From the sequence record MH791398.1: a stretch of 64,000 nt of DNA; one strand, given 5' to 3'. The notes beneath the pieces were generated by a model that did no database searches, was not told the origin of the DNA, and saw nothing but the letters and a program-made list of their open reading frames with translations. Made by a program: the position numbers and the translations under genes. Shown piece after piece: positions 4,718-55,927 of the stretch (the first letter of the stretch is position 1; the number at the start of each line of letters is the position of its first letter).

Positions 4718-5005
4718 ATGGTAATCGCACTTGGTTTTGTTGCTGGTGTTTGTTTCGTAAAATCGGTACAGGCTACTCGCGCAGCATATCAACGCGCTTT
4801 CACTACTGGCTATATCGTAGCCGGTCTTTCTTCCATATCTCTTCTTGCCATGTCTTAAGGGGATGTTATGACTTTTGCTCTGTTTGCAACCGGGTTTGGT
4901 TTAGGTACTGCTTTTATGGTATCGAAGAAAAAGAAACATAAGGTTATTGTGGTTGGTGTGAGTATTATTGCTGTTCTTGTTGAGGTTTTCCTACTTCCTA
5001 AATAG
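4718..5005 (+). CDS. two small membrane peptides (4718..4858, 46 aa; 4868..5005, 45 aa)
   Basis: RBS-preceded ATGs and hydrophobic translations (MVIALGFVAG..., MTFALFATGFGLG...). Confidence 0.6.
4997..5004 (+). promoter_or_regulatory. putative late promoter CCTAAATA
   Basis: Same 8-mer lies upstream of the spanins (60123) and the tail fibre gene (60853); variant of T4 late TATAAATA; 30 nt upstream of ATG 5034. Confidence 0.55.
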
Positions 5006-5033
5006 ATATGTAGATCTACGAAAGGAAAACAAC

Positions 5034-5909
5034 ATGTTGAAAACTAAAGAATTGTTCGAAACCCTGACCCGGTTTGATGAACAAATGGCACAAAGCCGAA
5101 ATCAAAAGGTCGAACTTACTAAAGATCAGGAATTCGAACTTAGCAAACAATCAAAGCTACCTGTTTCTATGCGGGTTGGTGCGTTTAAGGTTCAAAGTTC
5201 TGTTCATGCTCAAGCTCGCGCACACCAGCGAGCCGCTGCTAAAACGGCGGAAGAGTGGAAAGATTTTGCTCGAAAGATGGTAAAACACGTAGAAGCAAAC
5301 AAGATTAAGAATGGTACTTATATGTTCCATTCCCAATCGGAAAACCGCTCTGTAGTTGGTTCTGTAAAGGGTCGAGAAATCAATATAGTAACTGTGTTCC
5401 CAAAAGGAACTGGTGGTAAAATTTCTCATAAACAACAAGCTGCTGGACAAAAAAGCGCAATGATGGAATCGCTCGTTGAATCTCTTATGATACAAGACGA
5501 GTTTGAGTCTATGCTAAATGAAGCCAAGAATATCATTGGTTCTGATATAGATGGGGTTGAGGTGTTTGACCTTGACGAGGCAACAGAAAAGGCTGTTTCC
5601 GAAATGCCAGATGAACACAAGCCATACTGTCGTGATATTTGGCAGGATCCAATTCATCGGTCAACTGGGTCGGTTGCCCAGTTTGGTACAATTTTTCTTG
5701 ATGATTCTAACGATCCCGGTTTCCCTTTGATGATCGGTGATGTAAAGAAGGCTAAAATTGGAATCGGTGGTGAATATATTCCCATTGACCTTCGTCTAGA
5801 TTCCGGGAAATATGCATATGGTTCCATGGATGAACTAAAAGAGTTCCATCATGTGGATCTATATGATACAATTGCCGCTAGAAACTATGGGTATGGGAAG
5901 GATTACTAA
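5034..5909 (+). CDS. putative internal head protein with RegB/RelE-like N-terminal domain
   Basis: True start ATG 5034 (RBS AAAGGA); FKVQSSVHAQARAHQR...INIVTVFPKG; several xxE gp21-like sites (LVES, LNEA, LDEA). Confidence 0.5.
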   Translation: MLKTKELFETLTRFDEQMAQSRNQKVELTKDQEFELSKQSKLPVSMRVGAFKVQSSVHAQARAHQRAAAKTAEEWKDFARKMVKHVEANKIKNGTYMFHSQSENRSVVGSVKGREINIVTVFPKGTGGKISHKQQAAGQKSAMMESLVESLMIQDEFESMLNEAKNIIGSDIDGVEVFDLDEATEKAVSEMPDEHKPYCRDIWQDPIHRSTGSVAQFGTIFLDDSNDPGFPLMIGDVKKAKIGIGGEYIPIDLRLDSGKYAYGSMDELKEFHHVDLYDTIAARNYGYGKDY

Positions 5910-5910
5910 A

Positions 5911-6243
5911 ATGTTAAAGAATAAAGAATTTTTCGAACGAATCGATGAATCGTTTCAAATGAAAACATCCAAGGATTACAACCGGATTGTAAACCAATAC
6001 ATTTCTATTCTGAACAGTGTTCAAGCAAAAATGAATACTGCCGGTATGCGTGAGGCAAAACGTTTCTATGAAGTCCAAATGGGTGAATGGAAGCGTTGGG
6101 TAAAAGAAAACGTAGATATTACCAAGGTTAACATCAGCCCTATTGAGGATTTTGGTAAGATTACTTGGAAACGGTCTCAGTCTGACACACAACAAAGTTT
6201 TAACATCGCACACGGTAAACTTACCGGTATGCTCAAGAAATAA
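5911..6243 (+). CDS. putative internal head protein
   Basis: Start MLKNKEFFERIDES resembles a capsid-targeting leader; track start 5851 is upstream GTG. Confidence 0.5.
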   Translation: MLKNKEFFERIDESFQMKTSKDYNRIVNQYISILNSVQAKMNTAGMREAKRFYEVQMGEWKRWVKENVDITKVNISPIEDFGKITWKRSQSDTQQSFNIAHGKLTGMLKK

Positions 6244-6251
6244 GGAACAAA

Positions 6252-6524
6252 ATGAAAAAGTTTAATGAACTGGATAACCGCCTCGACGAGTCTATGATTG
6301 CAGAATCCAAAGATCTGATCAGTTCTGACTTCAAAAACTCCATTGCAAAGTTTTTTAATACTTGGATTGAACATCACGAACTAAAGTTTGGTTCTTTCGA
6401 AGCTAAGGCTAAATGGTCGGGAGAACAAATTGCAAAGAAAACCGCTATCGGTAAAGCGGCTGTTATGTTTGCTATGGGTCAAAACAAAGATGTTGTTGAT
6501 GCAGTAATGAAAGCCAAGAAATAA
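6252..6524 (+). CDS. putative internal head protein; paralog of 40112..40291
   Basis: MKKFNEL...LDESMIAES leader resembles the T4 CTS MKTYQEFIAE. Confidence 0.55.
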   Translation: MKKFNELDNRLDESMIAESKDLISSDFKNSIAKFFNTWIEHHELKFGSFEAKAKWSGEQIAKKTAIGKAAVMFAMGQNKDVVDAVMKAKK

Positions 6525-6528
6525 TTTT

Positions 6529-6578
6529 ATGGAGTCTTGCGAGAAATCGCTTGACTCCATTTTTGTTTCTGATACTAT
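6529..6578 (+). terminator. terminator overlapping an early promoter (PeSL-like cassette)
   Basis: ATGGAGTC..GCGA-GAAA-TCGC..GACTCCAT then TTTT; TTGACT (6551) in the 3' arm, TACTAT at 6573. Confidence 0.8.
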
Positions 6579-6602: not shown

Positions 6603-8645
6603 ATGAAAATCCAATTTATCAATGAAGATGTACGAAAAGTTGTGGTTTCAAAAGGTAAATCGTTGGCTGGGAAAAACGAATGGCTCATCGAGATCCCACG
6701 AAGTGAGAATTTCATCGTTGTTAATTTCAACGGAAACCCGTTGAGAGAGATTGATAATGCTGCGGTTGTTAGCTGGTCTTTCAACGGGCGGGACACCATG
6801 GAATATCTAAAAGAGATCCATAAAGACATCTACTATCAGACTTATATGGATATGTTACACACTCTCATTCTTCCAATGTTGGAGAGGGTTTAATTATGTG
6901 GACTGGTAAATTTGTTGTAAAATCATTTGTTCAATTGTCAAGAGAGTTTGAGTCTCTGAAAAAATACGAATATCGAGCATTCGAGAGTTCGGTGGAATCT
7001 TTACTGAATGATCTATACCCTATTGCATCGGCAAAAGGTTATGATGTATTATGTTGGTCGATGGTCCCAACCCACGATAGAAGTCCACATGTTTCTGTGA
7101 TGTTTACATTTAAATCTAGGAGCTAAAAATGAAACAATCTCGTATCGATAACGTAAACAACAAATCAATCGAAAAGTTCATCAACGTAATCAAAAGCCAG
7201 ATACGAAAAGTTCAGGAACAGGACTTTTATGATGCGGTTGCGGCCATTCCGGACGAATTGAAGTTTGATATTGTCCGTACCTTGAAAGACCTTCGTAAAG
7301 AACATCTGGGGAAAATCGATATTGTGGAAACCCCTTTTAATTCTGGTGTTGTCCGTGTAGAATATGAATTCAAGATTAATGGGAAAGTCCCAGTAAAAAT
7401 GGTGTACCATTGTTCCGATAAGATCACATTCCTTATCACAGAAGGGAAGTTTGAATCGGTTACCGGTGTTGAACAATGAAATATTTGGTAATAGGTACTT
7501 TACTTGGTATCTTGGCTATAGTAAACTCAGATGTATTCCAGAGTGAAAACGTAGATCTTCTTGAAGATTCCGTGTCTGGACTTAGTATTTTAATTGAACA
7601 AATGGAGAAATAGAAATGAAAAAGATGATTATCGCAATCCTTGCTGTACTGTCCTTATCTGCCTGTACTGATGCAGACGGAGCCCGTCGTGTATTGACCC
7701 AAAACGGATATACAAACGTTCATGTGGGTGGTTATGCTTGGTTTAGCTGTAGTGAAAAAGACACCTTTGCAACCAAGTTTACCGCAGTAAATCAAGCATC
7801 TGGTCAGGTTGTAAACGGTGCTGTCTGTTCTGGTTTGCTCTTTAAAAATTCCACCATCCGGTTTGAATAAGGTTTATTGATATGAGTAATCATGTATTGC
7901 GTGTGTATCGTTGGAAGGATGAATCGTCGAAAGACAAATGGTCTATTTCCGCTAGTGGTTATCAAAAGCTAGTTGCAATCTCCAACGACGTGATGAATCT
8001 TGAGGTTCTTGTTTGTGGATGTGATACCTACCAAGGTCGAAACCATGTAATGAAAATCGATGGGATTGATTACGATTATGGCGTATCAATCTTCACGACC
8101 GACGACATCGAGAATTTTTTGGTGGAATTATCGAAGGATGAAGTGGAGAAACTTTTCAAATGAAAGTAAAATATTTTGTATGGAAAGACGATAAATCCAA
8201 AGAAGATTGGAAAAATGATTTTTATAAACAACTTGGATTTGATCTGGAACAGTACAAGCCAATAGTTGATGAGATTTACAATATTGATACCCCGATGAAA
8301 TGTGTCATGAGTGACCGTTGGGAACAAACCATTGACACGGTTAATGATATTGGGATCCCCGGTTGGTTAATGTTTAGCATGAGTGATATTGTGGAAAAGG
8401 TTATCGTTGAGGTAGACCCCCCACATCAAGAGGTTAATATGAAAGAGCCTAAACTAGTAGAGCAAGGGTTTATCCCTGAAAGCGGTATGTTTACTGCTGT
8501 GTGGATAGAAAATGGTGTTATTCGTTCTGAGGATTTTATTGCCGAGGGTAATATGGTTGCAATCGCACGTATGCCTGAAATAAAATTCCCGTTGATTGAG
8601 TTAATTTTCCCTTCCAATTATAAAATTTTTGCTATCGAGGAATAA
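6603..8645 (+). CDS. run of small hypothetical proteins (6603..6893, 6896..7126, 7129..7479, 7476..7613, 7882..8163, 8160..8645)
   Basis: Abutting ORFs with RBSs; 7476..7613 (45 aa) found by manual translation. Confidence 0.7.
7616..7870 (+). CDS. predicted lipoprotein
   Basis: Signal peptide with lipobox LSAC; two further Cys. Confidence 0.8.
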   Translation: MKKMIIAILAVLSLSACTDADGARRVLTQNGYTNVHVGGYAWFSCSEKDTFATKFTAVNQASGQVVNGAVCSGLLFKNSTIRFE

Positions 8646-40054: not shown

Positions 40055-40088
40055 TTGACGTAGATTAGGGGGTATGAGATTATACCCC
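40055..40088 (+). promoter_or_regulatory. early promoter with -10 in a hairpin loop
   Basis: TTGACG-17-GATTAT; GGGGTAT/ATACCCC stem. Confidence 0.75.
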
Positions 40089-40111
40089 TGTACCAACAAA
40101 GGAGAGAAAAG

Positions 40112-40291
40112 ATGATTAACACAGAATTCAAAAAAGCGGTTGCTGAGTTTTTCAACACTCATATCGAAGATCAGAAACTGATCTTCGAATCCTTTGATGC
40201 CAAAGTTTTGTGGTGTGGTAAGCAGATCAATGATAAAACTCCTGTTGGTCGTGCGGCCATTATGTTTGCAATGTCTAAAGTAAAGGTGTAA
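40112..40291 (+). CDS. 59-aa protein, leaderless paralog of 6252..6524 (not in ORF track)
   Basis: MINTEFKKAVAEFFNTHIEDQKLIFESFDAKVLWCGKQINDKTPVGRAAIMFAMSKVKV; RBS AAGGAG. Confidence 0.8.
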   Translation: MINTEFKKAVAEFFNTHIEDQKLIFESFDAKVLWCGKQINDKTPVGRAAIMFAMSKVKV

Positions 40292-55020: not shown

Positions 55021-55927
55021 ATGTCTATAGAAATAAACATTATGAGACAGGCAGAAACAGAAACAAACGGGATGTTGCCTGCGCTCATCCCATCATGTAT
55101 GGGGGCATTGGTAGCAAGTGTACTTGTTGGTTGTGGGTTTGTGCCGGATGTCAATCTATACATACTGTTATGTGCCATATTTTATGTTCTCCTTGATATT
55201 GTGTTCATGGTAGTTGTATGGATTAAGCGCCCCAATTATGGCAAAGAGTTTAAACATCCATTATCTATGTGTATGCTATACTCATTTTGCGATAATAACG
55301 TTGGGAAATACCTTCATATTTATAAAAATACACCAAACTTTAATCTACGAATTACTATTGCAGGAATAGTAATATACTTTTGTGATTTTGTATTTTATCT
55401 TGGTTTATTTGGTGTTCCTGTAATGGTATCATCTTGGTTGTTCCTCTAAATATAGTTTTGTAAAAAAGGAAAATGAAATGTCTATTGAAACTCGTGTAAC
55501 AAAAGTAAAACAACGTATTCATGAAGAAACCCAACGGGTTAAGTCAAATGCGATTGTTACGTGGGGCCTGTTCTTCATGGCAGCAGCCCTTGCATCAATC
55601 CCAGCATCCACTATGTATGGCCCTATTATCATTGGCGCTATCGTGATGGTGATGTTCCAGTATCTGACCATGATCTCTTATGCTAAAGAACGGGTAGGTT
55701 ATCTTGGTAAAGCTTATGCTAACCCAATGACACTGATCTACATCGAGAGTGGTATTGATGGGGTTAAAGATCTGGAAGAGTCAATTCGGAAATGGGAAGC
55801 AATGACCAACGATGAACGAGAGGCTACCAACAAACGAATCAATGCAATCACGGTTGTGGCTCTTTTGGCTCTCATTGCTGCTGTTTCTGGCTTCTTCTGT
55901 GGTCTTTTCTGGCTTCTCCCAGTATAA
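55021..55927 (+). CDS. two multi-pass membrane proteins (55021..55449, 55478..55927)
   Basis: Several hydrophobic segments in each. Confidence 0.7.

Follow-up and report, generated by a model that had tools for sequence, protein, structure and literature searches.

Of the cargo carried by T4-like phages, the internal head proteins are understood least, and only a few of them have a known role. Among those to which the literature assigns one are IPI* (PMC3012670) and Alt (PMC2988021). The targeting propeptides of T4 are 10–20 residues long (PMC5694885), and the T4 prohead protease gp21 recognizes the motif L/I-x-E and cuts after the Glu (PMC9026906). In T4 IPI, IPII, and IPIII, a short N-terminal propeptide ending in L/I-x-E is common to otherwise unrelated small proteins, whose mature products are small and basic and which are expressed late; gp21 and the gp22 core are encoded by the same phage, and the IP genes lie together at a hypervariable locus that has promoter plus stem-loop cassettes on its flanks. 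That a packaged protein can have an early paralog is a concept already known from Alt and ModA/ModB, the paralogs of one domain of which Alt is packaged and injected and the Mods are early proteins (PMC2988021; PMC5512222). Two other systems have to be considered here: the early promoter plus stem-loop (PeSL) cassettes of phages RB49 and phi1 (PMC2839356), and the polyvalent packaged proteins, in which several modules are joined in one polypeptide (Iyer et al., 2017; PMC5512222).

In this work we analyzed bases 1–64000 of Aeromonas phage Asswx_1 (MH791398.1), to which our stretch of 64,000 nt, hereafter the window, is identical. Asswx_1 (Straboviridae, Emmerichvirinae, Ceceduovirus) is a T4-like jumbo phage with a 229-kb genome and its host is Aeromonas salmonicida. 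Aeromonas phages are under study for aquaculture therapy. Almost every gene of the first 60 kb is small, annotated as hypothetical, and located on the + strand, and the same strand continues the early-direction region with the replication genes. Within this region one small domain is encoded twice, and the closest known case to this pair is T4 Alt with its early paralogs ModA and ModB: one paralog has a predicted propeptide and a late promoter motif, the other a predicted early promoter.

Two Copies of One Small Domain in the Asswx_1 Genome

A first-pass annotation of this DNA had proposed that the ORFs at 6252–6524 and 40112–40291 (here the long and short copies) carry the same domain. Both ORFs are present at these positions on the + strand and align without gaps: residues 22–79 of the long copy match residues 1–58 of the short copy with 30/58 identities and 44/58 positives (BLASTP, E = 2e-21). 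Both copies fall into phrog_14960, a family of unknown function, and in a tblastn search the domain was found at exactly two places in the Asswx_1 genome. The 59-aa ORF had been called unannotated, which needs correction: MH791398.1 contains it as a CDS, ASswx1_108, described as a hypothetical protein and equal to CC2 001. Table 1 lists the features of the two loci.

Table 1. Positions in the window (position 1 is its first base) of the genes and signals at the long-copy and short-copy loci.
Feature	Coordinates	Strand	Remarks
Possible stem	4985..5030	+	4985-4992 with 5023-5030, 8 bp; pairs the ORF12 Shine-Dalgarno in read-through transcripts
Late-promoter motif CTAAATA	4998..5004	+	36 nt before the ATG at 5034
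ORF12, 291 aa	5034..5909	+	Opens the late block; leader, conserved N-domain, linker, variable C-terminal module
ORF13, 110 aa	5911..6243	+	Leader ending in I-D-E13|S; phrog_18704 covers residues 1-110
Left 10-bp direct repeat CAAGAAATAA	6234..6243	+	Last codons and stop of ORF13; from alignment with CC2
ORF14 (ASswx1_14), long copy, 90 aa	6252..6524	+	Leader 1-18 (6252-6305), core about 22-79, tail 80-90
Right 10-bp direct repeat CAAGAAATAA	6515..6524	+	Last codons and stop of ORF14; from alignment with CC2
Intrinsic terminator	6529..6560	+	Hairpin followed by T-run; ends the late block
Early promoter, sigma-70 type	6551..6578	+	TG-extended -10; for gene 6603; overlaps the terminator
Early promoter of the short copy	40055..40083	+	TTGACG, 17-nt spacer with TG, GATTAT; member of the promoter class
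G/C-stem hairpin, PeSL-type	40068..40089	+	GGGG...CCCC, 9-bp stem, overlaps the -10 box; region z -2.87
ORF108 (ASswx1_108), short copy, 59 aa	40112..40291	+	Bare three-helix domain; Shine-Dalgarno AGGAG at 40100-40104

A Late-Type Promoter Motif and a Terminator Enclose Three Genes

The motif CTAAATA, usually with a C before it, is found 30–46 nt ahead of the start codons of structural genes of Asswx_1, including gp48, gp9, wac, gp13, gp15, gp19, gp20, gp24, gp34, and others, and CTAAATA is also the late consensus of Aeromonas phage Aeh1 (PMC1524935). The window contains six matches vs. 12 expected by chance, and the one ahead of ORF12 is the sole match in the first 55 kb. In CC2, phage 65, and the metagenomic contigs L011 and L012 the locus likewise has one late motif each, at the same position. 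By its promoter motif, the block of ORF12, ORF13, and ORF14 would be transcribed late, as the genes of T4 internal proteins are. More late motifs occur at 55446, 60124, and 60854 (+), before the genes at 55478, 60164, and 60899 in the tail-fibre region, and a further one at genome position 204257 (+), outside the window, precedes a 124-aa hypothetical gene that is a homolog of CC2 180; this gene lies inside the early-direction region and may be another late gene.

For ASswx1_13 the start annotated at 5851 is probably wrong and the true start is probably 5911, where a Shine-Dalgarno sequence and ATG come directly after the ORF12 stop; the common leader described below, the annotation of CC2_101, and the full coverage of the PHROG profile agree with this start. 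Downstream of ORF14 the terminator hairpin has a predicted energy of -20.3 kcal/mol (z -5.35; not one of 200 shuffles is as stable), it is conserved in CC2, and an analogous hairpin is present in L011. The gene at 6603–6893 that follows the late block matches the Pfam domain 2CompARG (ADP-ribose glycohydrolase) below threshold (E = 0.003, 18 bits vs. a cutoff of 27).

No terminator was found between the upstream early-direction genes and 5034, and early read-through into the late block is therefore possible. The stem at 4985–5030 appears in both the MFE and the centroid structure at -11.5 kcal/mol with a z of -1.0, a value indistinguishable from shuffles, and since it is identical in CC2 it offers no covariation. 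RNA from 5010 onward is unstructured on folding. According to these models a late transcript starting at ~5010 would be made without the 5' arm of the stem, and in read-through transcripts the stem might block ORF12 translation; a stem that hides a Shine-Dalgarno sequence in read-through RNA has a precedent in T4 gene e (PMC3014915). The place of the stem is taken in L011 by a G/C hairpin and T-run ahead of the late motif. Two tiny ORFs (46 and 45 aa; 4718–5005 of the window) are located directly before the late promoter, and similar ones are found at the same place in relatives; at least the second (4868–5005) is membrane-spanning by appearance, and the stop codon of this one overlaps the late motif.

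A Common Leader with Prohead Protease Motifs

The adjacent genes ORF12, ORF13, and ORF14 encode proteins with similar N-termini. When these were scored against all 2736 Met-started N-termini of the whole 229-kb genome of MH791398.1 (background mean about -6, sd about 8), the three leaders were mutual best matches with scores of 33 and 29, the next best being 23–26. Comparison of the three bodies beyond the leaders detected no relatedness. The leader of 13–18 residues is thus common only to the long copy and two neighboring, otherwise unrelated genes in this genome, and a leader shared by unrelated proteins of one phage is also what is seen for the T4 internal proteins. The leaders of ORF13 and ORF14 differ synonymously, which, read directly from the sequence, suggests that they are conserved at the protein level.

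The L/I-x-E motif stands at I-D-E13|S in ORF13 and at both L-D-E13 and I-A-E18 in ORF14; as background, 4% of ORFs have an L/I-x-E ending at residues 11–13. An (I/L)-x-E at residues 16–18 followed by S-K-D is found in all four long copies, and the first site is missing in three of the four. In ORF12 both expected sites deviate from the canonical motif, with F-D-E closing the leader and P-D-E at the domain junction. Homologs of gp21 and gp22 are annotated in the Asswx_1 record (ASswx1_224, ASswx1_225), so that by annotation the phage encodes a gp21-type protease and a gp22 core; the gp22 scaffold has an L-S-E|S-K context at its start that resembles the leaders, and contains 13 L/I-x-E sites in total.

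Residues 1–18 of the long copy are absent from the short paralog and are predicted at a pLDDT of 55–57 vs. >90 for the core. In length (~10–20 residues), in its position outside the fold, and in its putative L/I-x-E end, this segment corresponds to the propeptides of T4-type internal proteins; it is likened to them by length and cleavage motif, the leader of Asswx_1 having 13–18 residues vs. 10 in the T4 IPs. With cleavage after Glu18 (I-A-E|S) the mature long copy would begin at Ser19 and comprise residues 19–90 (72 aa, predicted 8.0 kDa, pI 9.65), small and basic like the mature T4 products; Leu22, three residues on, is paired in the alignment with Met1 of the short copy. The earlier remark that the early copy starts almost at the mature start of the late copy is therefore right provided that this putative cleavage site is correct. 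Lack of an internal L/I-x-E in the mature long copy was not counted as evidence, since we estimate that ~45% of 72-residue proteins lack one by chance.

A Predicted PeSL-Like Early Promoter Precedes the Short Copy

In the 57-nt gap before 40112, TTGACG and GATTAT are separated by a 17-nt spacer ending in TG-A. Within the window the general pattern (TTGAC, 14–15 nt, TG, N, K-A-N-N-N-T) is found at 14 sites, always on the + strand, vs. 1.41 expected, and none of 100 shuffles reaches 14. These sites range from 6551 to 50160 and nearly all are located 25–44 nt before a Shine-Dalgarno sequence and ATG. Upstream of the short copy the -35 and -10 hexamers are conserved and the spacer is variable in Aswh_1, CC2, AS-zj, and the metagenomic contigs L018 and L021. 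As in the PeSL cassettes of RB49 and phi1, there are sigma-70-like boxes, an A-rich upstream stretch, and a GGGG...CCCC stem over the -10 box, placed immediately upstream of an orphan ORF within a hyperplastic region; from the sequence, 40055–40089 is thus a predicted PeSL-type cassette. Several of the 14 promoter-class sites overlap G/C hairpins in a PeSL-like manner.

Distribution, Gene Architectures, and Selection

The domain family was found in 21 phage records representing 17 distinct phages, all of them Aeromonas T4-likes. Large protein collections add only a handful of metagenomic family proteins: a profile search of 1.84 billion representatives yielded five, and IMG/VR contained no family members beyond the isolate genomes. 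The proposal of double delivery made the co-occurrence of the two copies in relatives of interest, and it proved to be partial. Both copies are present in 6/17 phages (Asswx_1, Aszh-1, AS-zj, AS-yj, AP1, and AsSzw2), the short copy only in 8/17 (CC2, Assk, AS-sw, P19, G2, AS-szw, Aswh_1, and ZPAH1), and the long copy only in 3/17 (65, 65.2, and avDM6), so that double delivery, if it takes place, is optional. In the unannotated record of AsSzw2 (MN871441.1) tblastn aligns the long copy from residue 11 onward only, and the leader there may therefore be incomplete. The short copy of AS-zj (P0005; L015 3001–3204) carries an in-frame 9-residue tandem duplication in helix 2, and the long copy of this phage is intact.

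Aligned with CC2, which lacks it, ORF14 is a 281-bp indel, and its presence varies among phages that are 95–99% identical. This indel is bounded by a 10-bp repeat within coding sequence (Table 1) and not by two PeSL cassettes. In phage 65 the long copy is located before, not after, the ORF13 homolog. Like the T4 IP genes, these genes are clustered in a hypervariable locus with promoter plus stem-loop cassettes at its flanks.

A third architecture is seen in the metagenomic protein P0009 (273 aa), in which a leader and the conserved N-domain of the ORF12 family are followed by a junction with I-D-E and I-N-E|S-K-D and, behind the junction, by the domain including its C-terminal tail; its gene is located behind the same late motif. 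The ORF12 family in general has a conserved N-domain, in most members an I-(N/D/M)-E junction, and then one of several interchangeable C-modules or none. P0009 and the ORF12 family are similar to polyvalent packaged proteins in that several modules are carried on one leader-bearing polypeptide with likely proteolytic release. They differ from them in having two modules only and in that the prohead protease, cutting at I-x-E, and not a peptidase domain of their own, would release the modules; Pfam detected no known polyvalent-protein domain. In L011 the fusion protein and the ORF13 homolog are separated, still inside the late block, by a 101-aa ORF (6824–7129) that has an acidic tail and no leader. 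In the deposited sequence of phage 65 (L003), two breaks, one or both of them frameshifts, fragment the ORF12 homolog, and an intact 287-aa relative of it is the metagenomic P0014.

The family alignment has 19 invariant columns, and a basic C-terminal tail that the short copies lack is conserved within the long clade. In a neighbor-joining tree the putatively packaged forms group together, as do the short copies of the early locus in a second clade, with two bare forms outside; the support is weak because the alignment has only 58 columns. The dN/dS is 0.05 (Asswx_1 vs. CC2) and 0.08 (vs. Aswh_1) for the short copy and 0.08 (vs. phage 65) for the long copy, and synonymous sites are saturated between the long and short paralogs. 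Purifying selection on both copies indicates that both are translated and constrained; this includes the 40112 ORF, with values of 0.05–0.08, whose translation the first-pass annotation had made a precondition of its proposal.

Predicted Fold and Searches for a Function

AlphaFold2 predicts three helices for the short copy (residues 4–20, 28–40, and 44–56; mean pLDDT 94.7). In the long copy the core is predicted at >90, the leader at 55–57, and the tail at 64, and residues 2–41 form one continuous helix. Neither copy has a Pfam match. The best Foldseek match of the fold in PDB has an E of 2.4, BFVD returned only the family's own members, a sequence-profile search of PDB gave a best E of 0.86, and PADLOC reported nothing. 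By sequence or by fold, no similarity to a characterized member of an anti-defence or defence-related family was found. The top PDB match in Foldseek, an HMG box (E = 2.4, TM 0.40), was rejected as not meaningful. DNA binding by a helix-turn-helix was also rejected: helix 3 is largely hydrophobic, and its conserved A-A-x-M-F-A-M points to the core rather than to a recognition helix.

Comparison with the known systems by the same means gave no sequence or profile link of the domain to T4 IPI, IPII, or IPIII (by Pfam; the PHROG families have no assigned function and are confined to these phages), and the long copy would thus be a functional analog and not a homolog of them. ModA, ModB, and Alt are ADP-ribosyltransferases of several hundred residues, unlike the Asswx_1 domain with ~58 residues and three helices, in which no ADP-ribosyltransferase domain or enzyme signature was found (Pfam; 58-residue three-helix fold). 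In the literature we found no virion proteomics for CC2, P19, G2, ZPAH1, AS-zj, or phage 65, and no virion proteome, N-terminal sequence, or transcript map for any Ceceduovirus phage.

Discussion

The reading that we prefer, with a probability of roughly 60%, places the long copy at the end of a late operon of three genes (5034–6524), all coding for internal-protein-type head proteins, and has the domain act early in the cytoplasm. From the promoters, leader, and cleavage motifs we infer packaging, cleavage, injection, timing, and target in the following way. The operon would be transcribed from a gp55-type late promoter at 4998, and the short acidic leader would take the long copy into the prohead core, where the gp21-type prohead protease would cut the leader off after Glu18 (I-A-E|S) and possibly also after Glu13. 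The resulting 8-kDa basic three-helix protein would be carried into the cell together with the DNA. The short copy, which has neither the leader nor the C-terminal tail, would be made by host RNA polymerase from its own sigma-70-type promoter on DNA arrival, so that one paralog would arrive pre-made and the other be newly synthesized. Since the bare copy would be made before heads exist, the most likely site of action of the domain is the host cytoplasm as infection begins, and, judged from these sequence signals, its role is most likely in host takeover or counter-defence and not structural in the head.

The last point has to be weighed against a function in the head itself. The long copy could be packaged and work there, as a core accessory or by neutralizing DNA charge, with a separate cytoplasmic role for the early copy. 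A small mature product with a pI of 9.65 would suit this, as T4 internal proteins contact DNA phosphates (PMC3012670), and so would the basic C-terminal tail that only the long clade conserves. We consider it unlikely: the paralog is bare, 52% identical, and expressed before heads, and the core residues are conserved between the forms (the 19 invariant columns), which argues for a shared activity that is free of the capsid; the three phages with the packaged form only and the eight with the early form only further suggest that the functions of the two forms overlap. Whether the leader is a targeting signal at all can be questioned from the fold, since the predicted helix is continuous from residue 2 to 41 and the packaging of the long copy is inferred. 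The N-terminal extension might then do nothing more than lengthen helix 1, and the copies would be ordinary cytoplasmic early and late isoforms. A mere helix extension would not be expected on two unrelated neighbors and on no other protein of the genome, ending in L/I-x-E and predicted at low confidence; furthermore, P0009 retains I-x-E|S-K-D internally and the ORF12 family has I-x-E before its C-modules. Of the alternatives discussed here we give this one the lowest probability.

The presence of both copies in one genome could also be devoid of special meaning, ORF14 being a cassette recently gained or lost at a hypervariable locus, with either copy sufficient and the possession of both a transitional state. 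The 281-bp indel between 10-bp repeats that varies among 95–99% identical phages speaks for this, as do the distribution of the copies (six both, eight short only, three long only) and the 9-residue duplication in the short copy of AS-zj, a phage with both. Against a transitional state stand the strong purifying selection on both copies and the saturated synonymous sites and separate clades, which indicate that the paralogs are old and that both lineages have long been kept; we regard it as quite unlikely.

The first-pass annotation had gone further and had interpreted the pair as one domain that is delivered both by injection and by immediate-early expression and that inhibits a fast-acting host defence. 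Its structural half, a late copy with a targeting-type leader and a bare copy under an early promoter, is strongly supported at the sequence level by the leader on three adjacent unrelated genes, the L/I-x-E sites, the sole late motif in 55 kb, an early-promoter class that is enriched and conserved, and the natural fusion behind an I-x-E junction. The defence-inhibitor half found no direct support, as the domain matched no family, solved structure, or defence-related model in our searches. By analogy with T4 IPI*, an anti-defence role is possible.

In these phages one domain is found in three natural formats: bare with an early promoter, leader-tagged with a late promoter, and fused behind a protease junction. 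Together the three formats pin down the end of the leader, and they suggest that the leader is a portable tag in nature and not just in engineered T4. The orphan three-helix fold and the two neighboring leader-bearing proteins are candidate injected proteins of Aeromonas phages. It is a tentative suggestion, and one we hold with considerable doubt, that the domain represents a previously undescribed effector family that serves host takeover or counter-defence, is required from the very first seconds of infection, and is delivered in three formats. If this is true, the family would be a natural model for the gain and loss of head-targeting leaders, and the Emmerichvirinae would have three ways to deliver one effector: pre-made via a leader type of their own, expressed from an early promoter, and released by the protease from a two-module internal polyprotein.
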